Below, piece after piece: positions 5,112-62,714 of a DNA stretch of 64,000 bases. The notes beneath the pieces were generated by a model that was not told where the DNA came from, searched no databases, and saw nothing but the letters and a program-made list of their open reading frames with translations. The stretch is from positions 372,001 through 436,000 of IMG/VR virus record IMGVR_UViG_3300034072_000758; one strand, given 5' to 3'. Each line of letters starts with the position of its first letter. Position 1 is the first letter of the stretch. The position numbers and the translations under genes are program-made.

Positions 5112-5636
5112 ATGAAAAGAGAACGCGATTCTCAGCGCTCTAAGCTTTATAAAGCCGAAGGGGTATTAGGGAAATATTCTAAACGTCTCGAAACTGTACC
5201 GCAGATAGAGCGTTATGTAAAAAAGGTCAGTGAGAAAGCCACCATCCAGCGTCGATATAAGCGTTTCTTGACGAGAAATATTATTGTGCGAGACGGGCGA
5301 GGTCGTCTCAGTGCTGGGGGTGACTATTCTGGAATTTGGATGCCGGTATGGTCTCGCACGGAATATCTGGTACTTCACGAATTGTCTCACACGCTTACTC
5401 AGCGAAAATACGGCCAGAAAGTCGCCGGTCATGGTTGGCAATATGCGGCGATCTATCTGGACCTTGTTCGTTTTGCATTGGGTGTAGAAGCGTTCGAATC
5501 TCTCAAAGAAAGTTTCAAAAAACATAAGGTTCGTTTCTCGGAAAAGAAAACTCGTCAGATTACAGATGAGCAACGCAAAGTTCTTATCGAACGAATGGCA
5601 AAGGCGCGCGAAGCAAAAGGGAAAAAGGCGGCGTAA
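5112..5636 (+). CDS. Putative zincin-like metalloprotease (HExxH)
   Basis: VLHELSH motif followed by GHG..Y/F; start set at ATG 5112 after the promoter. Confidence 0.5.
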   Translation: MKRERDSQRSKLYKAEGVLGKYSKRLETVPQIERYVKKVSEKATIQRRYKRFLTRNIIVRDGRGRLSAGGDYSGIWMPVWSRTEYLVLHELSHTLTQRKYGQKVAGHGWQYAAIYLDLVRFALGVEAFESLKESFKKHKVRFSEKKTRQITDEQRKVLIERMAKAREAKGKKAA

Positions 5637-35441: not shown

Positions 35442-35868
35442 GCACGGCTATTTCCTTACCATGAGTAAAACACAACGAGAAATCTATGTCGAGCGCGTCT
35501 TGCCGGTAGATGAAGAAATTGTGTTTCCTATTTTGGTGGAAATAGCCCCTCAACTTCCTGAGATACAGGAAAACAAGTTTTACTACTATATCATGAAGGG
35601 AAAGGCGAGAATTGCTTTCATCACAAAGCGCCTCGATAACATGTGTGTGGGGAGATATATTCTCAAGGATGGAAAATGGTCAGCCCCGACTTGTTTCAAA
35701 AACGAATGCTTCGCGCGAGGTCGATCATTGACCGCTATTCTTCCGCCGTTTCTGATAGACGAAGAATGGGCTAAAGAAGTCGCGGACAAGTCAGTATATG
35801 GGCGTTCTAAAGCTTTATCTCTGGCGGACTTGGAACGCATTGGTGGTGGTACTCCCGACCAGAATTGA
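35434..35868 (+). CDS. Hypothetical protein
   Basis: 144-aa ORF; 3' end overlaps the antisense tRNA-Glu. Confidence 0.55.
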   Translation: MRRHGYFLTMSKTQREIYVERVLPVDEEIVFPILVEIAPQLPEIQENKFYYYIMKGKARIAFITKRLDNMCVGRYILKDGKWSAPTCFKNECFARGRSLTAILPPFLIDEEWAKEVADKSVYGRSKALSLADLERIGGGTPDQN

Positions 35869-35921
35869 ACTGGCACTCTCCGCTTGAAAGGCGGGCGTCA
35901 TGACCATTAGACCACGGGAGC
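35847..35921 (-). tRNA. tRNA-Glu(UUC), third in transcript
   Basis: Cloverleaf GCTCCCG..CTTTCAA..TTCAATT..GGGAGT-A-CCA. Confidence 0.92.
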
Positions 35922-35945
35922 ATAGTCAACAAAGTGTTAAATTGT

Positions 35946-36020
35946 TGGTACTCCCAACGGGATTCGAACCCGTGTCGCCGGATTGAAAGTCCAGCATCCT
36001 GACCACTAGAAGATGGGAGC
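35946..36020 (-). tRNA. tRNA-Glu(UUC), second in transcript
   Basis: Cloverleaf, loop CTTTCAA, encoded CCA. Confidence 0.92.
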
Positions 36021-36053
36021 ATAGAAAATCAAAAGCCCGATCTCTCGTTCTTT

Positions 36054-36127
36054 TGGTACTCCCTACGGGAATCGAACCCGCGTTGTCAGATTGAAAGTCT
36101 GTTGTCCTGCCATTAGACGAAGGGAGC
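36054..36127 (-). tRNA. tRNA-Glu(UUC), first in transcript
   Basis: Cloverleaf, loop CTTTCAA, encoded CCA. Confidence 0.92.
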
Positions 36128-36165
36128 ATAAAGCCTCAAACCCTCGTCTATAAACGAAGGTGAGG

Positions 36166-36201
36166 TTAGCGTTCCTCTCGTTCCTCTCGGATGGCAAACA
36201 T
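36166..36201 (-). CDS. Glu-rich leader peptide MFAIREEREER
   Basis: AAGGA RBS; ATG TTT GCC ATC CGA GAG GAA CGA GAG GAA CGC TAA; stop is 38 nt upstream of the first tRNA-Glu. Confidence 0.7.
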   Translation of the reverse strand: MFAIREEREER

Positions 36202-36272
36202 AACAACAGTTCCTTAAAAAGCGCACATGCGCGTTGGTAGATAATTGTTCTATCAGAAACTATTTATCTGTG

Positions 36273-36653
36273 TCAAGCTTTTTGTTGTAAATAGTTTGGA
36301 ATAAAATGCGACACGTTCGGGTAAACCCAGCATGGGTCTTCTCGGTCGATCTCGATTGATTCCTCAGCATCAAAATCGTATCTGGTTAAAAATTCGTCTA
36401 ACGTATAAACGAATAAAAAATTTTGTGTCGGAATGCCATTTTTTAGGCGATGATACTCATCGAATGAGAGGATTTTTTTATACGCAAAAGAGCGGTGTAT
36501 TTCCCCTATTTGTGCGTTTGGCATTGGCACGAACGCATTGAGTTCAGCAAAGACCCGTTCATATTCGGCGTCAAGATCGTTGAGAAATGATTTCTTGCTT
36601 TCTCGTTCAACGGTGAAAATACCACCATCTACTACAATGATCAGACGTTCCAT
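36273..36653 (-). CDS. Hypothetical protein
   Basis: 126-aa ORF. Confidence 0.55.
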   Translation of the reverse strand: MERLIIVVDGGIFTVERESKKSFLNDLDAEYERVFAELNAFVPMPNAQIGEIHRSFAYKKILSFDEYHRLKNGIPTQNFLFVYTLDEFLTRYDFDAEESIEIDREDPCWVYPNVSHFIPNYLQQKA

Positions 36654-51613: not shown

Positions 51614-51770
51614 TTTGCTTTAACACAAGAGATAACCCACTCTTTTAGGGAGTTTTATCGTGGGGCGTTCCACGTTTTAGGAGACCGGCATGACTAAACC
51701 CATCACCGATATAAAAAGCATACACCACTCATTGAAGATTGCGCAATTTATTTTTACAGTTTCTTAACAT

Positions 51771-51928
51771 AAAAAAAAGAGCACCGGAACGAGGACCGAT
51801 GCTCTTTCTTTTTCCAACCCCAAATTAATGGGAACGGTGAGTTTCACTTGAACACCTCAAGAGTTGTTAACGCGGTGCGTTCCGCATCACAGACATTCGA
51901 GAAAGGAGTAAACAAAATGTCTGCGAAG
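51771..51928 (-). ncRNA. Candidate multi-hairpin sRNA with anti-SD loop
   Basis: TTTACT-16-TATTAT promoter (51960-51933); four hairpins; 12-bp terminator with T-run. Confidence 0.55.
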
Positions 51929-51989: not shown

Positions 51990-52018
51990 TTGACAAAGAT
52001 TCGTGGATTTTGATAAAT
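51990..52018 (+). promoter_or_regulatory. Promoter region of the main tRNA operon
   Basis: TTGACA at 51990 with ATAAATA at the -10 position. Confidence 0.55.
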
Positions 52019-52094
52019 AGAATTGTAACGGACGAAACCGCATGTTGCGATCTCGCCCACCATCACGAAATTCAAGAAGGAAAGACCCTTTCAA

Positions 52095-52235
52095 ATGTTT
52101 GCCGCCGTCGCCACCATGATCAATATTGCCAATCAAGTCGATACCGACTTTGATATGGCTATTGCCATGCCCGCCACGCAGCAGCCATTTAGCGTGGGGT
52201 CAATCCATCTGACAGGTGATGATACTGGAATTTAA
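52095..52235 (+). CDS. 46-aa tRNA-operon leader peptide
   Basis: GAAGGA RBS; MFAAVATMINIANQVDTDFDMAIAMPATQQPFSVGSIHLTGDDTGI. Confidence 0.7.
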   Translation: MFAAVATMINIANQVDTDFDMAIAMPATQQPFSVGSIHLTGDDTGI

Positions 52236-52304
52236 AACAGTTCACACCAATCAAAACAGATAAGGATCGACCCCCGAAGCGCAAAGTTTCGGGGGTTTTC
52301 TTTT
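52196..52304 (+). promoter_or_regulatory. Attenuator: antiterminator and intrinsic terminator
   Basis: Terminator ACCCCCGAAG-CGCAAAG-TTTCGGGGGT plus T-run (52270-52304); GGGGTCAATCC (52196-52206) pairs 10/11 with GGATCGACCCC (52264-52274). Confidence 0.7.
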
Positions 52305-52349
52305 GTCTAAACACTTTGTCCGAAGTTTGTATACAAATTTAGGACATAT

Positions 52350-52421
52350 GCCACGATAGCTGAGAAGGATTAGCGGCTGTCTGAAAAGCAGTAGAGAGAC
52401 GTTCGATACGTCTTCGTGGCA
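52350..52421 (+). tRNA. tRNA-Phe(GAA), atypical D-loop
   Basis: GCCACGA/TCGTGGC acceptor; loop CTGAAAA. Confidence 0.85.
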
Positions 52422-52422
52422 C

Positions 52423-52496
52423 AGTAGATTAGCTCAGTCTGGTAGAGCACACGCTTGATAAGCGTTAGGTCACTGGTTCAAATCCAGTATCTACTA
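52423..52496 (+). tRNA. tRNA-Ile(GAU)
   Basis: Cloverleaf; loop TTGATAA. Confidence 0.9.
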
Positions 52497-52497
52497 C

Positions 52498-52570
52498 GGT
52501 CGATTAGCTCAGTTGGTAGAGCACTGTCTTGATAAGGCATAGGTCGCTGGTTCGAATCCAGCATCGACTA
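52498..52570 (+). tRNA. tRNA-Ile(GAU), second copy
   Basis: Cloverleaf; loop TTGATAA. Confidence 0.92.
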
Positions 52571-52594
52571 CCTCCTTCGGGAGACTTTATTAAT

Positions 52595-52668
52595 GTAGCC
52601 GTAGCTCAGTCTGGTAGAGCATCTGGTTGAAACCCAGAGTGTCAGTGGTTCAAATCCACTCGGTTACA
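52595..52668 (+). tRNA. tRNA-Phe(GAA), second copy
   Basis: Cloverleaf; loop TTGAAAC. Confidence 0.9.
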
Positions 52669-52670
52669 CT

Positions 52671-52748
52671 TGCGGATTGGGGGAGCTTGGAGTCCCCGCT
52701 GGCCTCATAAGCCAGAGATCACCGGTTCAAGTCCGGTATCCGCTCCCA
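52671..52748 (+). tRNA. tRNA-Met(CAU), initiator-like
   Basis: 1:72 T-T mismatch; loop CTCATAA; encoded CCA; lacks the GGG/CCC anticodon-stem pairs. Confidence 0.75.
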
Positions 52749-52796
52749 ATACTTCCCTCCGGGGATGTAGTCTTTGACATTGTGAATAACGATTAT

Positions 52797-52870
52797 ACAA
52801 GCGTAGCTCAGTCCGGTAGAGCGACGGTCTCATACGCCGTTTGTCGCAGGTTCGAATCCTGCCGCTTGTA
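52797..52870 (+). tRNA. tRNA-Met or Ile2 (CAU)
   Basis: Cloverleaf; loop CTCATAC. Confidence 0.85.
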
Positions 52871-52871
52871 C

Positions 52872-52947
52872 TGAGGGTTGGTGTAGTAGGTAACATAGCT
52901 GACTTTGAATCAGAAGATGGCAGGTTCGAGACCTGCACCCTCAGCCA
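52872..52947 (+). tRNA. tRNA-Gln(UUG)
   Basis: T1-A72; loop CTTTGAA; encoded CCA. Confidence 0.92.
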
Positions 52948-52951
52948 ATAT

Positions 52952-53023
52952 TTCCGTGTAGCTCAATGGTAGAGCACCCGCCTGTTAAGCGGACGGTTGC
53001 TGGTTCGAGTCCAGCCACGGGAG
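52952..53023 (+). tRNA. tRNA-Asn(GUU)
   Basis: Cloverleaf; loop CTGTTAA. Confidence 0.92.
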
Positions 53024-53033
53024 CGGAGGGATT

Positions 53034-53154
53034 GTAGGTGGACCAGATGGCATGGGGAACCTTCATATGTGAATGTCGTATAAGTGAACCCGTATAGGGT
53101 GAATACGCTCCCCCTATGTTGGGAGAGATTGTGGTTCGAATCCACACGTTTACA
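53034..53154 (+). ncRNA. tRNA-like element with an expanded, non-canonical centre
   Basis: Perfect T-arm TGTGG-TTCGAAT-CCACA; weak acceptor stem; no canonical anticodon loop. Confidence 0.45.
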
Positions 53155-53155
53155 C

Positions 53156-53231
53156 CTGAGTGTGGGGGAGTCTGGCCGTCCCTGTCGGTTTTGGAAACCG
53201 AAGATCGTGAGTTCAAATCTCACCACTCAGA
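53156..53231 (+). tRNA. tRNA-Pro(UGG)
   Basis: Cloverleaf; loop TTTGGAA. Confidence 0.9.
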
Positions 53232-53276
53232 CAAGGCATTGTAGGTGGGCGTTCGCGCGGTGAAACCTTCGATTAT

Positions 53277-53353
53277 GGTGATGTATCTCAGTCTGGTAGA
53301 GAGGCGCGTTGTCAGCGCGACGGTCGCGGGTTCGAATCCCGTCTTCACCGCCA
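53277..53353 (+). tRNA. tRNA-Asp(GUC)
   Basis: Cloverleaf; loop TTGTCAG; encoded CCA. Confidence 0.9.
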
Positions 53354-53354
53354 A

Positions 53355-53426
53355 GGTCTCATAGTTCATCGGTTAGAACACCGCCCTGTCACGGCGGAGG
53401 GACGGGTTCGATTCCCGTTGAGATCG
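53355..53426 (+). tRNA. tRNA-Asp(GUC), second copy
   Basis: Cloverleaf; loop CTGTCAC. Confidence 0.92.
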
Positions 53427-53428
53427 CC

Positions 53429-53650
53429 CTACAGAATTGTAATCTCGTCAGCCTTCACAGTGAAAGCTAAATCCTTACCGGAGACTTCGAAATGGTATTC
53501 ACCATTTCCCAGATCGACAAGCATATCGCTCACCGTACCTTTTTTCACCCTGCGATTTTGACCGTATTGAGTAACGGTGATCGACTTGTTGAGCGATGCT
53601 TTGAGCTTTGGTTGGCGAGCATACGCCATGAGCTTTTCGGAGAGTTTCAT
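53429..53650 (-). CDS. Hypothetical protein
   Basis: Last gene of a five-gene antisense cassette. Confidence 0.55.
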   Translation of the reverse strand: MKLSEKLMAYARQPKLKASLNKSITVTQYGQNRRVKKGTVSDMLVDLGNGEYHFEVSGKDLAFTVKADEITIL

Positions 53651-53895
53651 GGTTTGTTCAGTGCCTCTAAAATGACTTTGATATTCTCGATCATCCGAGC
53701 TTTACCGGCGTCGTCGTGAGCCGCATAAATTTCATCCAAAGTTTTTTCTTTGGGTTTAATCGGATCGGGAACTGATGTGTCGCCAGCCAATCGTAAGCTA
53801 TTGCTCATGCTAACATATTCGCGGGCTTCTTCTAATGTGGAACAACCATGTCCCAATAAAGGTTGCCACCGATTGTCTGCGAAAAACTCGATCAT
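53647..53895 (-). CDS. Hypothetical protein
   Basis: Start moved to ATG 53895 (ATGA overlap with the upstream stop). Confidence 0.55.
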   Translation of the reverse strand: MIEFFADNRWQPLLGHGCSTLEEAREYVSMSNSLRLAGDTSVPDPIKPKEKTLDEIYAAHDDAGKARMIENIKVILEALNKP

Positions 53896-54227
53896 ACGGA
53901 TGTCAATCCGGCTTTGAGACACCATGCGTTCCATTGATCTTGGGCGTAGTTCATGGCGTCTTGTTCCGTGACACCCTTTTCGGAAAGACACTTCAAGCTA
54001 TGGTCCGGGTTCTTCCCACCAAACCACGCAGTCATTTTGACATGTGGTCCATGAACGCTCATGTTGACGCAGCGATCACCGTGGTATGTGCGCTCGATAG
54101 TACAGACCCTATACGATCCTGACCAACCTTCGATCTTAGAGACGCCAGCCCAACTAATAGTGGGTAAGCCGGGAGCGCTCCAATCGTCCGGTGTCTTCTT
54201 GGTCTTTGGTTTCCAAACTAAGGTCAT
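53892..54227 (-). CDS. Hypothetical protein
   Basis: ATGA-coupled; 111 aa. Confidence 0.6.
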   Translation of the reverse strand: MTLVWKPKTKKTPDDWSAPGLPTISWAGVSKIEGWSGSYRVCTIERTYHGDRCVNMSVHGPHVKMTAWFGGKNPDHSLKCLSEKGVTEQDAMNYAQDQWNAWCLKAGLTSV

Positions 54228-54775
54228 TTCGTCACCAGTTCTGCCAACGCGGCCTTGGCTTCCTCGACAGCCAGTTGCATTTGACCCATTTCTTCAAAGG
54301 TCATTTGGATCGGACCATTGGTAGCTAAGTGGACGTTGATGCCCTTTGTGGGGTTCTTCATTTGGTCGAACCGTTCTTCGTCATAATAGTTCGATTGGAA
54401 TTTAATGGCATCCTGTAATGTTTTATAATTACCCGGATACCGAGCCATAGATTCTTTTGCCTGATGAAGAATGTATTCATCGACGGTGGCGAATTGAGCA
54501 AGATCGGGATTAGTCCCGCGATAATATTTGTAATTGTAACCTGAACCCAGATTGACGATGATTACCACCTGACTTCCACGAGAGAAAGTCTTTCGGATTT
54601 CGACTTGAGGAAAGCCTAGCTTAATCCCGGTGATTTTGGCTTTCCAAGCCACTTTATCATCGTCGCTCATGTTGGATTGATAGCCGCCCGTAGGACCACC
54701 ATCGAAGCCATAGTCGTCGGCCCATTCTTGCTTGGTTTTGACTTTTTTGGGTTTATCCCACATTAGCAAGGGCAT
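54224..54775 (-). CDS. Hypothetical protein
   Basis: 183 aa; GAGG RBS. Confidence 0.65.
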   Translation of the reverse strand: MPLLMWDKPKKVKTKQEWADDYGFDGGPTGGYQSNMSDDDKVAWKAKITGIKLGFPQVEIRKTFSRGSQVVIIVNLGSGYNYKYYRGTNPDLAQFATVDEYILHQAKESMARYPGNYKTLQDAIKFQSNYYDEERFDQMKNPTKGINVHLATNGPIQMTFEEMGQMQLAVEEAKAALAELVTK

Positions 54776-54776
54776 A

Positions 54777-55079
54777 CTATTCCTCGATACGATGTTTGAT
54801 TACGGTATGGACTGTTCGGGTTTCTACGACAACATACTGTACGGGCGTTTTATTATATGTGCGCTGCCGCTCAATGAATGCCTTGGTACTTTCAAGCGTC
54901 GGAAAGCCATTGGCACGATCCCCGCGCCCCATGTTGATTTCTTGAAGATGTGGATAACCATTGTCGATCATCACCTCAAAATCGACGCTAGTGTATGTCT
55001 TCTCATTATTTTGAGGATCGCTCAAGATAATCTCCATGAAAATGTTGCGATAATATATCACGACATTTTCATTCGTCAA
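54777..55079 (-). CDS. Hypothetical protein
   Basis: 100 aa. Confidence 0.55.
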   Translation of the reverse strand: MTNENVVIYYRNIFMEIILSDPQNNEKTYTSVDFEVMIDNGYPHLQEINMGRGDRANGFPTLESTKAFIERQRTYNKTPVQYVVVETRTVHTVIKHRIEE

Positions 55080-55083
55080 TCAT

Positions 55084-55157
55084 CTGTGTGTAGCTCAGTT
55101 TGGTAGAGTGTTCGCCTCGGACGCGAAAGGCCGCAGGTTCAAATCCTGTCACACAGA
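55084..55157 (+). tRNA. tRNA-Pro(CGG)
   Basis: Cloverleaf; loop CTCGGAC. Confidence 0.92.
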
Positions 55158-55159
55158 CC

Positions 55160-55276
55160 TTAGAACGTGATCGACATCTTGTTCAAATAAATGAACAGAA
55201 CGATCAGTGATCCGATGGCACTCCAAATGAGGATGCCGAAGATAAGCTTAAAAGCTCGGTCGTAAGAAGATTTCAT
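55160..55276 (-). CDS. 38-aa single-TM membrane peptide
   Basis: GAGG RBS; MKSSYDRAFKLIFGILIWSAIGSLIVLFIYLNKMSITF; below the ORF-track cutoff. Confidence 0.55.
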   Translation of the reverse strand: MKSSYDRAFKLIFGILIWSAIGSLIVLFIYLNKMSITF

Positions 55277-55359
55277 TTTAGTTTCCTCAGTGTTTTCTAC
55301 GATGATCACTGTTTTTTACACAAATGTCAATAATATTTAGCGACATAATGTCGCAGTAT

Positions 55360-55431
55360 GCTCAGGTAGGTCAGTGGTAGACCGTCTCTTTCGTAATGAG
55401 AATGCCGGGGGTTCGATTCCCTCTCTGAGCA
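55360..55431 (+). tRNA. tRNA-Thr(CGU)
   Basis: Cloverleaf; loop TTCGTAA. Confidence 0.88.
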
Positions 55432-55475
55432 CGGACTTCATTAAGTGTCTATTGAAAAGAAAGGAGGACAACGAA

Positions 55476-55706
55476 ATGCAAGTACAAACCCACAAACAAG
55501 TAAAACTCCATCGCAACAACGAACGCGATACTCGTTGGATTCCTTCTGAGTTCGCTCATGAAGGGCGAACGGTAGACCTGAAAAATGGCGGCGAGTGGAG
55601 CCGTGGATGGATTGTTAAGGAAGTATTTGACCCCGCTGTGGAATCAAAGTATATTCAAGAACAGTCCCAGAACTACAAGAACCACCGTAAGGCAACTGAC
55701 GTGTGA
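55476..55706 (+). CDS. Hypothetical protein
   Basis: AAGGAGG RBS before ATG 55476. Confidence 0.65.
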   Translation: MQVQTHKQVKLHRNNERDTRWIPSEFAHEGRTVDLKNGGEWSRGWIVKEVFDPAVESKYIQEQSQNYKNHRKATDV

Positions 55707-55735
55707 TTCGTGAGGGACGCTCTGTCCCTCATTAT

Positions 55736-55806
55736 TGAGGGATGGTGTAACGGTAACACATCTGACTCTGACTCAGAAGTTCTAGGTTCGAATCCTAGTC
55801 CCTCAA
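55736..55806 (+). tRNA. tRNA-Gln(CUG)
   Basis: T1-A72; loop CTCTGAC. Confidence 0.92.
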
Positions 55807-55817
55807 CAAGGTATGTT

Positions 55818-56099
55818 ATGCGACTTATGACCTCCGATGAAATACAACCCTTGGAAAAGAAGTTCATGGGGTACATTTCGACTCCGGTGTTGGATATTGA
55901 TGGGATCGGTCAGTTATGCGTTAATAGAGTATATATTCCTACTGATAAACTTGGTATCGGCAAATGGTATGTCACAGATGTGGCGACACCCGATGCGCAT
56001 TTCGCCTTCATTCGTAACCCAGATCATTCGATCATGGAGGTAATTGTTTCCGGGGATACATCAGACGAGTATCTGATGAAGTTGGCCGTATGTCTTTAA
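55818..56099 (+). CDS. Hypothetical protein
   Basis: Start reassigned downstream of the tRNA. Confidence 0.5.
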   Translation: MRLMTSDEIQPLEKKFMGYISTPVLDIDGIGQLCVNRVYIPTDKLGIGKWYVTDVATPDAHFAFIRNPDHSIMEVIVSGDTSDEYLMKLAVCL

Positions 56100-56482
56100 T
56101 CGAAACATCTAGCCTGTCTGGGCTTGAGGCGATGGCTATAGATTATGGCTTGGATGGCTTTCACGAGTATGCCAACAAATTTTCTTTTTTTATGCGTCTC
56201 GAAGAAGTCGATTACGACAAGTTCATAACCGAAGAATTGGTTATGGAAGTTGATGGATATTCTTTTCGGTTTAAAACCAACCCAGAAGAAACAGACGCAG
56301 AAATGGCATATGGCTGGCTTAAGTGTATATACACCGATACTTTTGAAGTTTCTATCGTCGGCGACGTAGAGCAAAACGAAAGTAAGCAACTTGTCACGAG
56401 TAACAGTTTGTCGCAAGATGAACTTGAAGATATAGTGTTTCGGTTAGCGTTGTTGACCAGTGATTACGGTATGGTCGATTAG
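56090..56482 (+). CDS. Hypothetical protein
   Basis: 130 aa; stop lies inside tRNA-Val. Confidence 0.55.
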   Translation: MSLIETSSLSGLEAMAIDYGLDGFHEYANKFSFFMRLEEVDYDKFITEELVMEVDGYSFRFKTNPEETDAEMAYGWLKCIYTDTFEVSIVGDVEQNESKQLVTSNSLSQDELEDIVFRLALLTSDYGMVD

Positions 56483-56547
56483 CTCAGTGGTAGAGCGCTC
56501 CCTTGACATGGGAGAGGCCGTAGGTTCGAACCCTACATCGACCACCA
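56473..56547 (+). tRNA. tRNA-Val(GAC)
   Basis: Cloverleaf; loop TTGACAT; encoded CCA. Confidence 0.92.
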
Positions 56548-56644
56548 ATTTTATTTTGGTGACTAAGTAAATTTAAATTGTAAATGCTTTGATGGGTGTG
56601 GTTATATCAGAAAAACCACAAAACAAAACTATCGGAGCAAAGCA

Positions 56645-56770
56645 ATGTCTAAGCCAGATTTCTTACGTCACTGTAATTTCCTCACGCCCGCTCAGGTTCG
56701 TGGGGTAACAATTACTCAGCCAGTAGCCCAACCGGCTGAAAAACAAGATGCTGTGGATAAAAGTAAATAA
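56645..56770 (+). CDS. 41-aa small ORF
   Basis: GGAG RBS; MSKPDFLRHCNFLTPAQVRG... Confidence 0.4.
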   Translation: MSKPDFLRHCNFLTPAQVRGVTITQPVAQPAEKQDAVDKSK

Positions 56771-56811
56771 ATATTTACAGCATGGCCTTGAATGTTGTAT
56801 TCTAGGCTTAT

Positions 56812-56885
56812 CGGGGTTTAGCGCAGTCTGGTAGCGCGTCCGTTTTGGGTGCGGAAGGTCGAGAGTTCGAATCCCTCAATCCCGA
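56812..56885 (+). tRNA. tRNA-Pro(UGG), second copy
   Basis: Cloverleaf; loop TTTGGGT. Confidence 0.92.
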
Positions 56886-56919
56886 CATGTCCACGGTAAC
56901 CATTCCGTAATGCGAAAGG

Positions 56920-56948
56920 CCCTGCCACCGGAAGGTGGTGGGGTTTTT
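56920..56948 (+). terminator. Intrinsic terminator
   Basis: CCCTGCCACC-GGAA-GGTGGTGGGG plus T-run. Confidence 0.75.
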
Positions 56949-57021
56949 CATTTCCCAACAAAATAAATTGACTTGAAAATCTTCTTTGTGCGATGATCGT
57001 TCATCAGTATAAGAGAGTATC

Positions 57022-57324
57022 ATGTTAAAACTATCGACCGAAGTTCAAAACATTTTGTATAAGGCTGTAACGTTAGAAAACGAATACATGCCTACAGACT
57101 TAGAAATCACTACTTTGGGTGATTTTCTTCTGAATGTAGTCGAGCGCGCTCCCGATGCTGATTTTTTGGATCACCCGGAGATATTCGTCACGGTGTTTGA
57201 TTTGATGCTTAATTACACAAGTACAGTATGCCCCAATCATCCTCGTGTTCAATATATACGAGACCTGAAACAATTCTTTGAAGCACTTTGGAAAGACAAA
57301 AATGAAACTCGAAAAACTAATTAG
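57022..57324 (+). CDS. Hypothetical protein
   Basis: 100 aa. Confidence 0.55.
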   Translation: MLKLSTEVQNILYKAVTLENEYMPTDLEITTLGDFLLNVVERAPDADFLDHPEIFVTVFDLMLNYTSTVCPNHPRVQYIRDLKQFFEALWKDKNETRKTN

Positions 57325-57730
57325 TGACGCGAAAAAAGGTGACGCTCCGTCTCAGTATAGCATTGGTATGCTATATGGTTACGGTACGCCGCTGACGCCG
57401 GACTTTTCCGAAGCAATCTTCTGGTTTGAAAAAGCCAGAGAACAGGATCACGCTGAGGCCATTTATAATCTCGGTGCGATTTATCAGTTCGAAGAGAACT
57501 TCAAAAATCTGGAAATTGCTAATCAGTATTTCGAAGAAGCTGCCAAGCTGAAACACGATGTCGCTGCGTACAATCTCGGTCTGAACTATATGACCGGCCA
57601 CGGAGTTCGTAAGGATGACGAGAAGGCGAAGTATTGGTTCGAGCAAGCCATTTTGTTTGGCAATAAGGTTGCGGTAACTATGTTGGCGCAATTGAAAACA
57701 AATCCAACTTTTTATAAAAGAGTTGCTTGA
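57302..57730 (+). CDS. Sel1-like repeat protein
   Basis: Three A.Y.LG..Y..G...A..WFE.A repeats. Confidence 0.9.
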   Translation: MKLEKLISDAKKGDAPSQYSIGMLYGYGTPLTPDFSEAIFWFEKAREQDHAEAIYNLGAIYQFEENFKNLEIANQYFEEAAKLKHDVAAYNLGLNYMTGHGVRKDDEKAKYWFEQAILFGNKVAVTMLAQLKTNPTFYKRVA

Positions 57731-57755
57731 CAGATCAAAACTGTTGATATATAAC
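57727..57755 (+). promoter_or_regulatory. Sigma70-type promoter for the large ncRNA
   Basis: TTGACA-17-TATAAC directly before the first long stem. Confidence 0.55.
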
Positions 57756-57762
57756 CTTAGAC

Positions 57763-59074
57763 ATGGTGATGAACCGGTGACTTGAGCTTTGGTAAAGCTC
57801 GAATTTACCAGTTAAAGAGAATTAAGCTGGTCCCCGATTTGCTTAGTTCGACGGTTCATCATCATATTGAACTAAATTGGATGGAGAGGTTGCGGTAACG
57901 AGTCCCCAGAGTCATTTGACTCAGCCTTTGGACTTAACCCCGTCCGTGCTTTTCGGTGTGGTAGCTCAAGATTGACAAGAGCGTTCCATCCAATTTAGTT
58001 TAATTGGGTAAGTCTTCGGGCCTACCGTTGGGGGAAGGATCAACACGGCTGCTGGCATGTTCCAGACAGGTGCCTTCCCTTTTAAATTCGCTCGAAAGAG
58101 CAAAGAGATTGTTCGGTAGGATCAAATCTTGGGTGATCGTGCGCTGGTCATCATGAGATAAAAGACCGGGGGCTAGTCCAGCCTCAAGTATCGGTGAAAG
58201 TCCGATCCGAACAACCAAATTCTGTGCTTCGTTGCGAAAGCGAAGGGGATTGACAGTCAGTCCCTAGCCTCATTGGAGGTCATCACAGAACGTTACCCCA
58301 CGGTGAAATATACGTGTGGCAGAGGGAGAGAGCCAATTGCGAGGAAATGCGCGCCGGTCTTTCCCTCATATAATTCGCTTGAAAGAGCAAATAACAAGTT
58401 GGCCGCTCGCATGATCGTTCCGAGAGGTAAGAGCAAAGATCGGTAGATGTTTCTACCAAATTGACGCCAACAACCGAGAAAGAGGGAACTACGGGCCTAA
58501 CCAATCCGTAAATCTCTCAGTGAGTGGACAGGAGTTGCGGACGCCCTTGGTCGGGAAGGTCACAACTCCGAAGTTGCTCAAAGTTTGGGCCGAAAGGCCA
58601 TAGCCGCGTGGTGACGAACCAGTAAGTCGGCTACGAGTTTCACCGAGAATGAGGCTGGGTGTACCCGTAAGTCCTCTACTCTCTGGTGTTTAAAGTTGAA
58701 TACGGACGAGCGCCCTGTGCGCGAACAGGTGATGGGCGCAGCCCTAGAGGATGGCAACGTCCGCTATACCTTCGGGGAAGCATCGGTTGGTAGTGATTAA
58801 TCCAATCCGCTCGTGTTCTACTCTAAACATTTCGGGTGACTAACATTTAGGGCTGGGGTCGCTACCCAAATCCGGTGTTGGTGTACAATTAATGAACGGC
58901 AAACTAGACTTGTTTCAGTAATTCTTTGTGCTGGCTTATTTGATAGAGCAAACAGCCTGAAAACTAAATAGAATACTCCCTGTGTGATCTGGCACTGGCA
59001 GGATTGTGGTTGACAAGACCCACTCGGCGAGTCTAAATGGACAGGCATTTACGGTACGCCTACTTATTACCGTT
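57763..59074 (+). ncRNA. Large ornate structured RNA, GOLLD-like
   Basis: ~1.3 kb without a credible ORF; dense stems with GNRA/UUCG loops and long-range pairings; ends at tRNA-Ala. Confidence 0.75.
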
Positions 59075-59076
59075 AT

Positions 59077-59149
59077 GGGGCCATAGCTCAGTTGGTAGAG
59101 CACCTGCTTTGCAAGCAGGATGTCGTCGGTTCGACTCCGACTGGCTCCA
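59077..59149 (+). tRNA. tRNA-Ala(UGC)
   Basis: G3-U70; loop TTTGCAA. Confidence 0.95.
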
Positions 59150-59266
59150 CTCGAATTTTGTGATAGATCGCCCCATAGGGGATATGCGTCCGTCACAGAG
59201 TTCCGGGGTTTGGGCCGCTTCCTCTCAAAAAGAAAAAGCGGTCGCTTAAGTTTTCGGAGTTGCGTA

Positions 59267-59596
59267 ATGAACCGGGCAGAAGCATTACTTGGCACAAAGC
59301 CAAAAGTTCCTAATCAGGTTCCTCCCGAAGCTAAACAACATATTCATGAATGCATCAAAAACGCCATGAATAATGGCGACACATCCTGCTATATCAATGT
59401 CCACGATCACCGTGTTCCTATCAGCACACTCGATTTGGAAGTCATTGAAGTATACCTCAAAGCCGAAGGATATAGATGTCATGTCCATTCCTATACGGAT
59501 GAACATGGCAGCGATGATGTTCTAGTCATCAAATGGGGAGAAACTTTCTTCGAAAGAGTGAAAAGATGGTTCCGTTCTATCCAAGAAAAAAACTAA
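59267..59596 (+). CDS. Hypothetical protein
   Basis: GGAG RBS before ATG 59267. Confidence 0.65.
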   Translation: MNRAEALLGTKPKVPNQVPPEAKQHIHECIKNAMNNGDTSCYINVHDHRVPISTLDLEVIEVYLKAEGYRCHVHSYTDEHGSDDVLVIKWGETFFERVKRWFRSIQEKN

Positions 59597-59877
59597 AAGT
59601 ATATTACGGATACTACTACTCCAAAAGTCCCCAACCGGTGCGCGGGCGAAGATATTTGGGTTGGTATCGCCGGAATGCAACACGCTTTCATCGTATTTAC
59701 CGCGTAGTAGAAAGCGTTGCTACGCTTGATCCACCAATTCGTCCCGGTCTTCCCAGAATGTATTTTACGGTCAAGTATTCCGGTCGTGATTGGGATTACG
59801 GTGAATTGAATTGGACCAAAGAACAGGCCGATGAACGTTGGCTGAACAGAAGAAACGAAGGTGCTTGTTTCACCTGA
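59566..59877 (+). CDS. Hypothetical protein
   Basis: Basic/aromatic ORF; start uncertain. Confidence 0.45.
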   Translation: MVPFYPRKKLKVYYGYYYSKSPQPVRGRRYLGWYRRNATRFHRIYRVVESVATLDPPIRPGLPRMYFTVKYSGRDWDYGELNWTKEQADERWLNRRNEGACFT

Positions 59878-59879
59878 TA

Positions 59880-59986
59880 TGGGCTGCTTGGAGTTTAGCT
59901 GGGTTCGAATCCCGCTCGATCCACCATTAAGATTGGGTCGATGTCACCGGAAGACAAGAGCGGGTTCGAGTCCCGTCCAGTCCACA
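59880..59986 (+). ncRNA. Anticodon-less double tRNA-like (Ala minihelix) element with crossed acceptor stems
   Basis: Two T-arms; TCGATCC-A-CCA pairs with the downstream GGGTCGA (G3-U70); GGGCTG pairs with the distal CAGTCC. Confidence 0.6.
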
Positions 59987-59994
59987 CCCTTTAT

Positions 59995-60067
59995 GGGGCC
60001 ATAGCTCAATTGGTAGAGCGCAAGTATGGCATACTTGAGGTCGCCGGTTCGATCCCGGCTGGCTCCA
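59995..60067 (+). tRNA. tRNA-Ala(GGC)
   Basis: G3-U70; loop ATGGCAT. Confidence 0.92.
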
Positions 60068-60085
60068 CATTTATTAGTTGACAGC

Positions 60086-60113
60086 TTGACAACAAAATAA
60101 AACCTGTTACTCT
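60086..60113 (+). promoter_or_regulatory. Sigma70-type promoter
   Basis: TTGACA-16-TACTCT with extended TG. Confidence 0.6.
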
Positions 60114-60145
60114 CCTGAATAACTCTAATATCAGGAGAATAAAAT

Positions 60146-61045
60146 ATGGTACATCAACCCATGCGTGGTCCGCAAATCGGCTCCGTTTCCGACTACGACG
60201 ACTATGACGATTATGGCTATTCGGAAATGGATAGCTATGGCATCGTTCGTCGGCATCGCAGCCAAAAAGAAAATATCAACAATTCTAAATGGGTTGATCC
60301 TATTCACGGTGGTCGCCGAACGAAACAGTCCGATCCCTATTACTTCTCCGAATATTTCCTTTTCGGTCGTCACGGCGACATCAAGCAAAAGGGCGTCACT
60401 GGCGATTATAGTGATCGTCTGAGTGAATGGGATCGTCTTCGTTATGACTTTCTGATGCGCAAGCATGTGCCGAATGGTTGGATGCGCGCAAGTCCTAGCC
60501 AACTCGAACCCTTCCTGACCGAATATTTCGGGGTCTTCAAGAACATCAAGGTGGTGGCTCTGGCCGAAGGCTGTAAAATGAGCGGCTATAACTACTTCAT
60601 CGTCTGGTATACATACGAAGAAGTGGCCGAACGCTCGAAGCCGAAGATCAAGCGCAAGATTGAGGCTGAAAGGAACAAGCTCAAGGAAGCCGAAGATCAA
60701 GGCTACCGCAATTCCGATCTGGGGATGTACCTTAAGTCGGCGGTGCGGGCGCTGGTCAGCGCGGCTCGTCCTATGTTCGGTGGCAAGCCCAAGGTTCACT
60801 GGCGCATTGACGCTCGTATCAAGCGTCTGGAAGCCATGACTATCGATGATCGCAAGCGCAAGAAGGGTGAGTTCAACAAACTCGCTAAGCGCATCCTCAA
60901 GCTGCTGAACGACACCAAGGCGGACCTGACCGCTCAAAAGTCGTACTACAGTTCCGATCTGGACAAGGCGATTGAAACCGTCGAAACCAAGATCAAGGAC
61001 TACAATACGCCGGGGTATAACCCATACGCGCGGGGCGCAGAATAA
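60146..61045 (+). CDS. Hypothetical protein (probably two domains)
   Basis: AGGAG RBS; 299 aa. Confidence 0.7.
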   Translation: MVHQPMRGPQIGSVSDYDDYDDYGYSEMDSYGIVRRHRSQKENINNSKWVDPIHGGRRTKQSDPYYFSEYFLFGRHGDIKQKGVTGDYSDRLSEWDRLRYDFLMRKHVPNGWMRASPSQLEPFLTEYFGVFKNIKVVALAEGCKMSGYNYFIVWYTYEEVAERSKPKIKRKIEAERNKLKEAEDQGYRNSDLGMYLKSAVRALVSAARPMFGGKPKVHWRIDARIKRLEAMTIDDRKRKKGEFNKLAKRILKLLNDTKADLTAQKSYYSSDLDKAIETVETKIKDYNTPGYNPYARGAE

Positions 61046-61482
61046 TGATCGTCGGCGAGTTCAAAACCGCAACCGGCATGACGACCATCTTTCATGATGC
61101 GGATGGTTATCATGTCAACGCCGCTGGTCGAGAAGACATTCACGGGGCGATGACGGCGGATGCGGTCGTTCGTTATCTTTGCGGTGCTTTGATCAGCGCC
61201 AATCACAAGCTGGGTATTGACCAGTTTGAAGATATGGAAGCGTTCGAAGAAACCGATCCGGGGATCGAAGCTGCCGCCTCCTTCTATCGTCAATTGGGGG
61301 ATGGTGACGAAGTTTATTCATTTGTTCCTCTAAACGAAGTGTGTATCCGTGGTACTCCCGAACGGCTGAAAGCTCTAGGGGAGTTTCTGATCGAAAGTTC
61401 AACTATGAGTGACGATCACGCACATTTCCAAACTCAGGGCGGCGTCAAGCCCGATTTCGTTGTGGTTAAGTCAGATGAATGA
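61045..61482 (+). CDS. Hypothetical protein
   Basis: TAATG coupling. Confidence 0.6.
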   Translation: MIVGEFKTATGMTTIFHDADGYHVNAAGREDIHGAMTADAVVRYLCGALISANHKLGIDQFEDMEAFEETDPGIEAAASFYRQLGDGDEVYSFVPLNEVCIRGTPERLKALGEFLIESSTMSDDHAHFQTQGGVKPDFVVVKSDE

Positions 61483-61855
61483 AAAACTGGAAGCCAAACT
61501 TGCTTGGGAAAAACTCTGTAAGCAAGCAAATACCAATCCGGCCTATACGCGCGACGTTGTGTTATCGACGGATAACAGTTTCCGCATCGCGGCTAAATCG
61601 GCGGTCGATGATCGATACGCGGATTGCGTATCAATAGAAATTTCGCATGAGGGTGATCCCCAGATGGGTTGGTCTTATGCTCATTTCTCACCGGCCCGTG
61701 CGCGTCTGTTCGCTCACATGCTAATCGAACGTGCCGATGCGCTGGAAGCAAAAAACGGCGTAGAGATCATCGATACCGAAAGCCTACAAGATCAGGCGCA
61801 TCGTCTTCGGGTGGCGGTTGATGAAAAACGCCGAAAGCTGGGATTGTTGAAATGA
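61475..61855 (+). CDS. Hypothetical protein
   Basis: Start at ATG 61475, overlapping the upstream gene end. Confidence 0.6.
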   Translation: MNEKLEAKLAWEKLCKQANTNPAYTRDVVLSTDNSFRIAAKSAVDDRYADCVSIEISHEGDPQMGWSYAHFSPARARLFAHMLIERADALEAKNGVEIIDTESLQDQAHRLRVAVDEKRRKLGLLK

Positions 61856-62055
61856 AACATTCCGACTTTGAACTCAACATGGAGTTTCGATGCGGTGGTA
61901 GTGATTGGAAAGTCACCGACATCGGAACTCGCACAATTATTGCCATCAAACTTACGGGTACGATCAACGACCTAACGTGGCTTGCTGGTCCGCCATACGC
62001 TCTCGAAGAAGTAGTCTTCGATGAAAATGATTTCGCAGGATGTGAAGTAATATGA
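61852..62055 (+). CDS. Hypothetical protein
   Basis: ATGA coupling; W.VTDIGTRTIIAI. Confidence 0.6.
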   Translation: MKHSDFELNMEFRCGGSDWKVTDIGTRTIIAIKLTGTINDLTWLAGPPYALEEVVFDENDFAGCEVI

Positions 62056-62375
62056 AATTGATTATTCTTCAAGCTGAACACGCAGAAGCCGCAATCGCTA
62101 CTCGCATCGTAACTCTGGAATACGAGTCAAAAGAAGCTGTCGATAAGTTGATCGAAGGCTACCTAGCATCGGCCCCCAAGCCGTTTACTTGGCGCGAATA
62201 CCGAGCGACTACGCCGGAAGAACGAGCCAAAAGAAAAGAAGAACGGGAAAATTGGGCTAAAGCTCAACCCGATCTTCAAATCGGCAAAGCGAAATTCCCA
62301 GCCGAAGTTCTTGTAAGGGCTTCTACTTACGTGTATGATCTGAATGCGTTCTTCGAAGAGTTTAAGGAAGGTTAA
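62052..62375 (+). CDS. Hypothetical protein
   Basis: ATGA coupling. Confidence 0.6.
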   Translation: MKLIILQAEHAEAAIATRIVTLEYESKEAVDKLIEGYLASAPKPFTWREYRATTPEERAKRKEERENWAKAQPDLQIGKAKFPAEVLVRASTYVYDLNAFFEEFKEG

Positions 62376-62378
62376 TTC

Positions 62379-62648
62379 ATGTACCACTTCATCGCCCTAC
62401 TTCTCACGTTTCTTCACGTGATCATCGCCATCATTGTTGGTGGTATCGGTTCAGTTTTGTTCATGTTCAGGACAAAAAATTTCCGCGATCTGACCGCAAT
62501 GATTCTGGTCATCGGTGGCATCTATATGCTGATCGGGGCTATTTTCTTCCCGGTGTTTGCTATCGGTTCGTTCGCCCTGTTCTGGCCAGTTTACATCGTC
62601 ACCCTGTATCTTCTTCACATCAAGAAAGAAGACAATACGCTCACATAA
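62379..62648 (+). CDS. Small multi-TM membrane protein
   Basis: Hydrophobic; stop lies inside tRNA-Thr. Confidence 0.65.
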   Translation: MYHFIALLLTFLHVIIAIIVGGIGSVLFMFRTKNFRDLTAMILVIGGIYMLIGAIFFPVFAIGSFALFWPVYIVTLYLLHIKKEDNTLT

Positions 62649-62714
62649 GTTCAATTGGTAGACTATCTCCTTGGTACGGAGGCAGTAGGAGTTCGAGTCT
62701 CCTTGTGAGCACCA
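62639..62714 (+). tRNA. tRNA-Thr(GGU)
   Basis: GCTCACA/TGTGAGC acceptor; loop TTGGTAC; encoded CCA. Confidence 0.88.

Follow-up and report, generated by a model that had tools for sequence, protein, structure and literature searches.

Phage tRNA genes are currently explained in two ways, as codon-usage compensation and as spare parts against host tRNA loss and tRNA-cutting defence systems (PMC11555353, PMC12409363), whereas the control of their expression is essentially unknown. A tRNA array in an uncultured giant phage with an unknown host, represented by a 517-kb metagenomic contig (IMG/VR record IMGVR_UViG_3300034072_000758), raises the question of whether such genes could be switched by the speed at which a leader peptide is decoded. 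We addressed this question in silico for a stretch of 64,000 nucleotides of this contig (positions 372,001 to 436,000, in the following referred to as the window). The array is preceded by a short ORF, which is written almost only in codons read by the phage's own tRNA genes, and by a terminator that is predicted to be switchable. In the absence of transcription or translation data, the most likely interpretation is that the phage makes these tRNAs only when the respective codons are decoded slowly. Our literature searches retrieved no description of such a mechanism for tRNA genes.

Organization and codon content of the leader

A sigma-70-like promoter, recognized by consensus matching only, is located at 51990-52019 on the plus strand and consists of the -35 element TTGACA (51990-51995), an 18-nt spacer ending in TG, and the -10 element TAAATA. 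The pattern TTGACA-N15-TGNTA is enriched in the window (11 occurrences found, 4.9 expected). Downstream of the promoter, a 5' hairpin of the transcript (52030-52058) contains the motif CGCATGT, and the combination of promoter and motif occurs only twice in the 517-kb contig, both times at tRNA leaders. The leader ORF (52095-52235) comprises 46 codons plus TAA, starts with ATG, and had been called as a gene in the source assembly. Its codon-usage log-odds are positive in this frame, although the antisense frame also scores positive. The Shine-Dalgarno motif AAGGA (52077-52081) lies 13 nt before the ATG, which is a rather long spacing. The ORF is followed by a strong intrinsic terminator with a 12-bp stem containing seven G-C pairs and a 5-nt loop (52269-52297) and the tail TTCTTTTG, with the T tract extending the element to 52306. 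An additional hairpin of unknown role in the spacer before the first tRNA (52316-52343) contains the palindrome TTTGTATACAAA.

Based on ARAGORN and Rfam, the terminator is followed on the plus strand by 11 tRNA genes (52350-53428) in the order Phe, Ile, Ile, Phe, Met, Met, Gln, Asn, Pro, Asp, and Asp. Further tRNA genes, namely Pro(CGG), Thr(CGU), Gln(CUG), Val(GAC), Pro(UGG), Ala(UGC), Ala(GGC), and Thr(GGU), are scattered among small ORFs at 55084-62714. The best promoter-like match between the terminator and the first tRNA of the array scores only 8 of 12 (TAAACA at 52308), compared with 9-10 upstream of four of the scattered tRNAs.

The first-pass annotation had claimed that the first 32 residues of the peptide use only the ten amino acids whose tRNAs follow on this strand in the window. 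This observation is real. Codons 1-32 (52095-52190) use only, and use all of, M, F, A, V, T, I, N, Q, D, and P, and 39 of the 46 residues overall belong to this set. Of the 32 codons, 21 are Watson-Crick cognates of a phage anticodon, 10 are read by G:U wobble, and one (CCC) has no standard reader, and 12 of the 14 distinct anticodons are sampled. As the ten residues make up 0.533 of the long ORFs in the window, the chance probability of the run is 0.533^32 = 1.8e-9. The run, which extends to 35 codons with the three upstream, is the longest in all six frames (the next is 20). Among 6,542 ORFs of 8-90 codons from 253 kb of phage DNA it ranks first, at 5.5e-8 against 4.7e-5 for the next. However, that the set comprises exactly ten amino acids depends on the window edge: Asn, Val, and Gly tRNAs follow at the window-equivalent positions 68250-68611, and Gly occurs three times in the tail of the peptide. 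Moreover, only seven of the ten amino acids have tRNAs in the array directly behind the terminator, and against this seven-residue set the enrichment is modest (rank 26 of 6,542). Twelve of the 32 codons are Ala, Val, or Thr. Their tRNA genes are located 3-10 kb downstream, beyond five minus-strand genes that score as coding, and some have promoter-like sites of their own. Hence, control of these tRNAs by the leader is not demonstrated.

Predicted alternative structures and ribosome stalling

The leader folds far better than shuffled sequences (z = -7.8), and codons 1-32 fold on themselves as a long imperfect hairpin (52093-52190). The first-pass annotation had also proposed that GGGGTCAATCC (52196-52206) pairs with 52264-52274. 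This pairing was confirmed, and the full helix joins 52192-52211 (region 2) with 52257-52282 (region 3), which overlaps the 5' arm and loop of the terminator. The duplex energy of this predicted antiterminator is -27.2 kcal/mol, stronger than 997 of 1000 shuffles of the ORF. Alternatively, region 2 can pair with the Shine-Dalgarno region (region 0, 52074-52089; -17.1 kcal/mol). The 3:4 duplex has an energy of -22.9 kcal/mol, and the terminator hairpin alone -22.2 kcal/mol. In a co-transcriptional fold series, region 2 first pairs with the Shine-Dalgarno region, the antiterminator is the minimum-free-energy state while the transcript ends at 52275-52290, and the terminator wins at full length.

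To predict the effect of ribosome position, a ribosome footprint was masked codon by codon. At equilibrium, the full-length RNA formed the terminator for every ribosome position (P >= 0.89), so this calculation could not discriminate and the switch must be kinetic. We therefore folded the transcript truncated before the 3' arm of the terminator. The antiterminator occupancy was 0.52-0.65 for A-site codons 1-30 and 0.00-0.09 for codons 33-40, and thus the stall-sensitive region coincides with the composition-restricted codons 1-32. It should be noted that this is a thermodynamic model and not a kinetic one. In the truncated RNA the antiterminator also forms without any ribosome (0.65), and the barrier from the Shine-Dalgarno-paired state is only about 9.5 kcal/mol. 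The untranslated state may therefore read through. In addition, both the Shine-Dalgarno site and the AUG are paired in the free RNA.

These results support a ribosome-mediated transcription attenuator, which we regard as the more probable explanation of the locus. According to this model, host-type RNA polymerase would start near 52020 and a ribosome would load on the leader ORF. If all codons are decoded fast, the ribosome would be on or beyond region 2 when region 3 emerges, so that the terminator forms and transcription stops before the tRNA genes. If decoding of any of the first ~30 codons is slow, the ribosome would lag, regions 2 and 3 would pair and sequester the 5' arm of the terminator, and the polymerase would read into the tRNA genes. 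As these codons are chosen only from amino acids for which the phage carries tRNA genes, the element would work as negative feedback on the supply of exactly those charged tRNAs. Translation of the ORF, the kinetics, the regulatory outcome, and the physiological trigger are inferred. In particular, nothing shows that tRNA cleavage by host defence nucleases is the trigger, as the first-pass annotation had suggested for depleted or cleaved tRNAs.

The strong predicted structure could also indicate a structured non-coding 5' leader of the tRNA precursor, which serves for example as a processing, stability, or protein-binding element and contains the ORF only incidentally. The long hairpin, the palindrome at 52316-52343, and a ~230-nt leader without an ORF before the first tRNA array of Sinorhizobium phage Phosso would agree with this view. 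However, structure alone does not explain why one reading frame is confined to 28 of the 64 codons for 32 codons, and a terminator with a T tract in the middle of a precursor needs a way to be bypassed. We consider this alternative unlikely.

Leaders and tRNA genes in related phages

The window's leader has no homologue with which covariation could be tested. A search of 5.8 billion proteins with the peptide retrieved only the query itself, a second contig from Logan has identical DNA, and megablast and blastn against phage records found nothing. Scans of IMG/VR for the promoter combined with ATGTTTGCC, or with the CGCATGT hairpin, returned only the two known sites in this contig plus chance hits without tRNAs.

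An independent case was found in a distant relative, a 509-kb contig (L012) in which a neighbouring gene is 42% identical to the window's. Here, a promoter, a Shine-Dalgarno site, a 53-codon ORF containing LLPLPLPVLLPL, and a terminator (L012 positions 15017-15050) precede a tRNA island that holds only Pro and Leu tRNAs, namely Pro(GGG), Leu(CAA), three Pro(UGG), Leu(UAG), and Leu(UAA). The Leu/Pro window of this ORF ranks first among the 6,542 small ORFs, at 9.5e-10, and samples all five anticodons by their Watson-Crick codons. The predicted antiterminator occupancy was 0.57-0.78 with the ribosome at codon 22 and on the Leu/Pro run (codons 25-35), intermediate (0.34) at codon 24, and 0.00-0.07 at almost every other position. 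Thus, leader content tracks tRNA content, and the core of the first-pass interpretation, which would have failed if leader composition did not track the tRNA repertoire in relatives, passed this test. A protein search with the L012 peptide retrieved only two near-identical variants. These close relatives of L012 (L027 and L028) keep the run with only two synonymous Leu changes, and show compensatory changes in two stems (C-G to U-A in the terminator and A-U to G-C in a UUCG hairpin), whereas the C-terminal tails of the peptides differ. That the Leu and Pro identities are kept by synonymous changes is also not explained by a purely structural role of the RNA.

It appears unlikely that the ORF is an ordinary small phage gene with its own terminator, followed by an independently transcribed tRNA array whose match to the peptide composition is coincidental. 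A gene caller did call it, the hydrophobic Leu/Pro stretch of the L012 peptide could pass for a membrane segment, and small ORFs followed by terminators also occur upstream of tRNAs without significant enrichment. However, the coincidence would have to occur at least twice at rank 1 of 6,542 in two distant phages, each time with the right amino acids. Furthermore, the stall windows coincide with the enriched codons, in the L012 family the RNA-pairing segments are conserved but the C-terminal tail is not, and the best promoter-like match after the window's terminator is weaker than those upstream of four of the scattered tRNAs.

A further possibility, which we regard as less likely, is that the same attenuator responds to amino-acid supply (charging) in the infected cell and not to tRNA abundance or cleavage, so that tRNA output would be tuned to the general translational state. 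Ribosome stalling reports charged tRNA whatever limits it, as established for the trp, his, leu, thr, and ilv leaders. The integration of ten amino acids over 30 codons in the window's leader fits a general speed gauge, and its codons are common rather than rare in the phage's own genes. In contrast, the regulated product is tRNA and not a biosynthetic enzyme, so extra tRNA would not relieve amino-acid starvation, and the sampling of each of five anticodon species by its exact codon in L012 points to tRNA species rather than to two amino acids.

We found no such leaders beyond these phages in the genomes examined. Phosso and Agrobacterium phage Atu_ph07, the nearest sequenced jumbo phages (DNA polymerase 45-47% identical), have large tRNA islands with small ORFs in between and sigma-70-like promoters. 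The first array of Phosso follows two promoters and its leader without an ORF, whereas the only candidate in Atu_ph07, gp469 plus a terminator, is not significantly enriched in cognate residues (rank 257 of 6,542). In an Ochrobacterium jumbo phage the tRNAs are embedded in operons, and in E. coli MG1655 no Phe-rich ORF was present in about 100 nt upstream of pheV or pheU. Within the phage studied here, leaders were also absent before the scattered single tRNAs and the Asn-Val-Gly cluster, where an Asn-rich 13-codon ORF is out of frame inside a real gene. None of the other homologues of the neighbouring 227-aa gene has tRNAs nearby, and an alignment of these proteins was too divergent to serve as a search query. 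Scans for the 224-aa neighbour of the L012 leader in IMG/VR and in the metagenome collection found nothing, and a 20-nt region-2 pattern gave 16 chance hits without tRNAs.

Known attenuators and the second, Glu-rich unit

The leader-peptide attenuators of enterobacterial amino-acid operons (trpL, hisL, leuL, pheL) likewise have a promoter, a short ORF with a Shine-Dalgarno site, regulatory codons, mutually exclusive hairpins (1:2, 2:3, 3:4), and an intrinsic terminator, and a stalled ribosome favours the antiterminator. The L012 leader fits this four-segment scheme closely. In the phage, however, the downstream genes encode tRNAs instead of biosynthetic enzymes. The window's leader has no run of one codon but a 30-codon region drawn from ten amino acids, its region 1 folds on itself, and the competitor for region 2 is the Shine-Dalgarno region. 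Multivalent leaders such as those of ilvGMEDA (Leu, Val, Ile) and thr (Thr, Ile) appear to sense two or three related amino acids whose synthesis the operon serves, whereas the two (L012) or ten (window) amino acids here are unrelated and defined by the downstream tRNA genes. The pheST (pheM) attenuator and T-box riboswitches also tie expression of translation components to the availability of charged tRNA through antitermination, but pheM senses only Phe and controls a synthetase, and T-boxes bind uncharged tRNA directly with a specifier loop and need no ORF. Only tRNA matches reached the Rfam gathering score, and with permissive filters and E up to 1 no leader or T-box hit was obtained in the sequences searched (L008, L007, and L027). 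The papers on phage tRNA arrays among our literature hits concern what the tRNAs do, which offers a functional reason for making them on demand, and none that we found describes how an array is switched.

If confirmed, this mechanism would extend leader-peptide attenuation from amino-acid biosynthesis to tRNA genes themselves, with a simple feedback rule of making tRNA only when it is short, and with delay integrated over many different codons. The codon content of such leaders could also serve as a signature of regulated tRNA islands in metagenomic phage genomes. A broader reading, which is about as likely as not, is that a clade of giant phages uses such leaders to fire tRNA arrays only when the host's decoding capacity for the respective codons falls, for instance after host tRNA decay or cleavage by anticodon nucleases. 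The window's version, with ten amino acids and 12 anticodons read as cumulative delay over 30 codons, would then be the broadest-spectrum attenuator known.

A second, minimal unit is located on the minus strand of the window (36128-36276). It comprises a promoter (36276-36248) close in sequence to that of the main leader, a 5' hairpin, an 11-codon ORF encoding MFAIREEREER (36201-36166), and a hairpin (36165-36134) abutting the first of three tRNA-Glu(UUC) genes (35847-36127). As noted in the first-pass annotation, which regarded this ORF as a Glu leader, both ORFs start with ATGTTTGCC. However, the Glu mini-ORF does not fit the same stall logic and is mechanistically unclear: the hairpin lacks a good U tract and is blocked only by a ribosome at codons 9-12, as in pyrBI-type coupling. 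This, together with the lack of ribosome protection of tRNA transcripts, could suggest the opposite polarity or a mere coupling role, in which a closely following ribosome prevents termination, either at the intrinsic hairpin or by Rho, and good translation means more tRNA. For the main leader this is improbable, because its stop codon is 34 nt upstream of the terminator stem, so a terminating ribosome cannot cover the stem. In L012 a defined antiterminator is predicted to form only on stalling, and positive feedback would not explain codons matched to the tRNA set. Nevertheless, with four Glu codons before three tRNA-Glu genes, the Glu enrichment of the mini-ORF ranks 4th of 6,542.

Leader ORF composition and the phage tRNA complement

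The window is part of a 516,805-bp viral contig, IMGVR_UViG_3300034072_000758 (JGI Ga0310127_000012), with window position w corresponding to contig position 372,000 + w. It encodes a family-B-type DNA polymerase, a ligase, a helicase, and a tail sheath protein. The polymerase is only 45-47% identical to those of the jumbo phages Phosso and Atu_ph07, and 42-45% identical to those of the listed Rak2-like phage 121Q and its relatives. No sequenced phage is close at the DNA level.

The first-pass annotation had described a 46-codon ORF (52095-52235) with a ribosome-binding site and a strong intrinsic terminator in front of a tRNA array, and these features were confirmed. A Shine-Dalgarno-like AAGGA is located at 52077-52081, and the terminator at 52269-52297 consists of 12 pairs, 7 of them G-C, with a 5-nt loop and a T tract. 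Further upstream, an A run, a hairpin and a T run at 51763-51812 look like a bidirectional terminator that closes the upstream operon and leaves the leader with its own promoter, although this was seen by eye only and is not listed by the terminator scan. ARAGORN and Rfam agreed on 22 tRNA genes. On the + strand, a tight array of 11 genes at 52350-53428 (Phe, Ile, Ile, Phe, Met, Met, Gln, Asn, Pro, Asp, Asp), in which Phe, Ile, Met, and Asp are each present twice, is followed by eight scattered genes up to 62714 (Pro, Thr, Gln, Val, Pro, Ala, Ala, Thr), whereas three tRNA-Glu genes are located on the minus strand at 35847-36127. The first tRNA after the terminator (Phe, GAA; 52350-52422, + strand) scores lowest but one among the tRNAs of the window (52 bits) and has an unusual D arm. 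Between the terminator and this tRNA, a hairpin at 52316-52343 (+ strand) contains the perfect palindrome TTTGTATACAAA and could be an operator or a processing site. Almost every tRNA gene, including the Glu genes, is preceded by TAT or CAT directly before its first base, which may represent a shared context for 5' processing.

The first 32 residues of the leader peptide use only, and all of, the ten amino acids served by tRNAs on the + strand, and 39 of the 46 residues overall belong to this set. Of the 32 codons, 21 are exact Watson-Crick cognates of a phage anticodon, 10 need G:U wobble, and one (CCC) has no standard reader. Twelve of the 14 anticodon species are sampled. As the ten residues account for 0.533 of the residues in the long ORFs of the window, a run of 32 has a probability of 1.8e-9, and this run is the longest in all six frames (35 codons against 20 for the next). 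We also scored 6,542 ORFs of 8-90 codons, obtained from 253 kb of this and other phage DNA, with the same windowed binomial statistic, and the leader ranked first (5.5e-8 against 4.7e-5 for the next). The ten-residue set corresponds to 28 of the 64 codons and excludes every codon with G in the middle position. Therefore, base composition and the hairpin do not explain the restriction. However, the set is defined by the edge of the window: Asn, Val, and Gly tRNAs follow at window-equivalent 68250-68611, with no more up to 83740, and Gly occurs three times in the tail of the peptide, so that 42 of 46 residues have a phage tRNA in the region read. Moreover, only seven of the ten amino acids are served by the array directly behind the terminator, and against that set the ORF ranked 26th of 6,542.

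Twelve of the 32 sensing codons encode Ala, Val, or Thr, whose tRNA genes lie 3-10 kb downstream and are separated from the array by five called, overlapping minus-strand ORFan genes (53429-55037). Codon usage supports these genes as coding although they have no known homologues. The stop codon of the last one abuts the 3' end of tRNA-Asp, with no terminator for either strand. Several of the scattered tRNAs also have promoter-like sites of their own. Given the seven-residue set, the chance that all twelve remaining residues are Ala, Val, or Thr is about 0.31^12. Hence, the link to those tRNAs is real, but it is probably not simple operon membership. Either the read-through transcript runs on through the antisense block, or the leader gauges the whole set of phage-supplied tRNAs.

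Alternative RNA structures and ribosome position

The leader transcript folds much better than shuffled versions (z = -7.8). Region 2 (52192-52211) can pair with the Shine-Dalgarno region (52074-52089; -17.1 kcal/mol) or with region 3 (52257-52282; -27.2 kcal/mol), which overlaps the 5' arm of the terminator, while the terminator stem itself is -22.9 kcal/mol. The 2:3 complementarity is stronger than in 997 of 1000 shuffles of the ORF, and the pairing of 10 of 11 bases that the first-pass annotation had proposed is the core of this helix. Folding of successive transcript lengths without a ribosome gave a clear order of events. Region 2 first pairs with the Shine-Dalgarno region, switches to region 3 once the transcript ends at 52275-52290, which is about 10 kcal/mol more favourable, and returns to its first partner when the terminator is complete. 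The estimated refolding barrier is about 9.5 kcal/mol. At equilibrium the complete RNA always forms the terminator, wherever a ribosome is placed, and any switch must therefore be kinetic, as in classical attenuators.

To determine where a stalled ribosome would matter, a ribosome footprint (15 nt before to 13 nt after the first A-site base) was masked at every codon of the transcript truncated before the 3' arm of the terminator. The fraction of region 3 paired with region 2 was 0.52-0.65 for A-site codons 1-30, fell through codons 31-32, and was 0.00-0.09 for codons 33-40. It rose again near the stop codon, but there the ribosome would sit inside the 45-nt loop that the helix would close, which we infer to be sterically impossible. 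The window in which a delay allows antitermination thus coincides with the composition-restricted window, and the composition relaxes exactly where the sequence becomes constrained by pairing. This suggests a timer that adds up delay over about 30 codons of ten kinds, rather than a stall at a run of one codon.

A Pro/Leu leader in a distant phage

The leader peptide has no homologue. In contrast, the 227-aa gene located 1.5 kb upstream has homologues, and its best hit (42% identical) lies on a 509,001-bp contig from NCBI assembly GCA_040384025.1. About 4 kb downstream of that gene, this contig (locus L012) carries a TTGACA...TATAAA promoter, a Shine-Dalgarno site, a 53-codon ORF that also starts Met-Phe, a strong terminator (15017-15050), and an isolated island of seven tRNA genes comprising Pro(GGG), Leu(CAA), three Pro(UGG), Leu(UAG), and Leu(UAA). 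No other standard tRNA lies in the 40 kb read around the island, although ARAGORN reported a tRNA of undetermined identity with a two-base anticodon 'cc' 7 kb away (14050-14130, + strand, of the sequence designated L023). Codons 25-36 of the ORF read LLPLPLPVLLPL, a window that ranked first of 6,542 (9.5e-10), and its codons include the exact Watson-Crick codon of each of the five anticodon species. The predicted fold is that of a textbook four-segment attenuator, in which the Leu/Pro run pairs with 14938-14980, and when the run is masked, that segment pairs with the 5' arm of the terminator. Codon by codon, antiterminator occupancy was 0.57-0.78 for A-site codons 22 and 25-35, 0.34 at codon 24, and 0.00-0.07 at every other position, including with no ribosome. 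Thus, leader content changes with tRNA content between two distant phages, which is the outcome that the first-pass annotation had named as the test of its interpretation.

Two short contigs, L027 and L028, carry variants of this leader that are 94% identical in peptide, and in L027 the same first three tRNAs follow. The sequence upstream of the promoter is diverged, while the leader is conserved from the -35 element onward. The Leu/Pro run shows only two changes, both synonymous for Leu, whereas the C-terminal tail of the peptide and the spacer before the terminator differ in sequence and length. The terminator carries one compensatory C-G to U-A change and one G.U to A-U change, and a UUCG hairpin just before the Shine-Dalgarno site carries a compensatory A-U to G-C change. 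The changed base in the 5' arm of the terminator still pairs with region 2 as G.U. With three sequences this evidence is thin, but every change goes the expected way. In addition, three to five copies of ATGTCCGCATATG, followed by a conserved TTGACA, lie between the terminator and the first tRNA in L012 (15125-15235) and in the matching part of L027. These may be regulator binding sites or a second promoter.

Other tRNA units and known attenuators

Upstream of the three tRNA-Glu genes lie a promoter very like the main one, a 5' hairpin with the same CGCATGT core, and an 11-codon ORF that starts with the same nine bases and holds four Glu codons. The enrichment of this ORF ranked 4th of 6,542, and the combination of promoter and hairpin motif occurs only at these two places in the whole 517-kb contig. 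However, the hairpin after the ORF has a poor U tract and directly abuts the tRNA, and only a ribosome at codons 9-12 blocks it. Its mechanism is unclear, and we regard the Glu unit as suggestive and not as a second proof.

Other tRNA clusters lack such leaders. The Asn-Val-Gly cluster beyond the window (positions 5207-5621 of the sequence designated L009, window-equivalent about 68200-68611) has its own TTGACT-17-TATAGT promoter about 25 nt upstream, with a -10 region resembling that of the main leader's promoter, and nothing else. The scattered tRNAs have none. The first array of Phosso follows two promoters and a leader with no ORF, and an Ochrobacterium jumbo phage embeds its tRNAs in operons. 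In Atu_ph07, the annotated 42-aa ORF gp469 (L047 6246-6063, minus strand), which has a Shine-Dalgarno site and is followed by a strong terminator, lies directly upstream of Ala, Arg, and Phe tRNAs and shows the same layout as the leader described here, but the enrichment of cognate residues in this only candidate is not significant (rank 257 of 6,542). The device therefore seems confined to a sub-clade and to particular islands.

A tRNA-matched leader-peptide attenuator is the best-supported explanation of these data, with moderate confidence for the element in the window and higher confidence for L012, whereby either tRNA loss or amino-acid shortage may act as the trigger. On this interpretation the element works like the trp, his, leu, and pheA leaders, and the L012 version could be filed with them on anatomy. 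It differs from these leaders in the class of its target, tRNA genes, and it matches no Rfam leader family or T-box. Full-text literature searches, which omitted much of the older subscription literature, returned no paper whose listed title or abstract describes leader-peptide attenuation of tRNA genes in phages or elsewhere, and the MG1655 sequence shows no Phe-rich leader ORF in about 100 nt upstream of the E. coli tRNA-Phe genes pheV or pheU. The multivalent ilv and thr leaders probably sense two or three amino acids, and ten would probably be unprecedented. Interestingly, a gene for a PTH2-type peptidyl-tRNA hydrolase (Pfam PF01981; 48274-48801, + strand) lies 3.3 kb upstream of the leader. 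A stall-based sensor would produce peptidyl-tRNA, so this neighbourhood may not be accidental.
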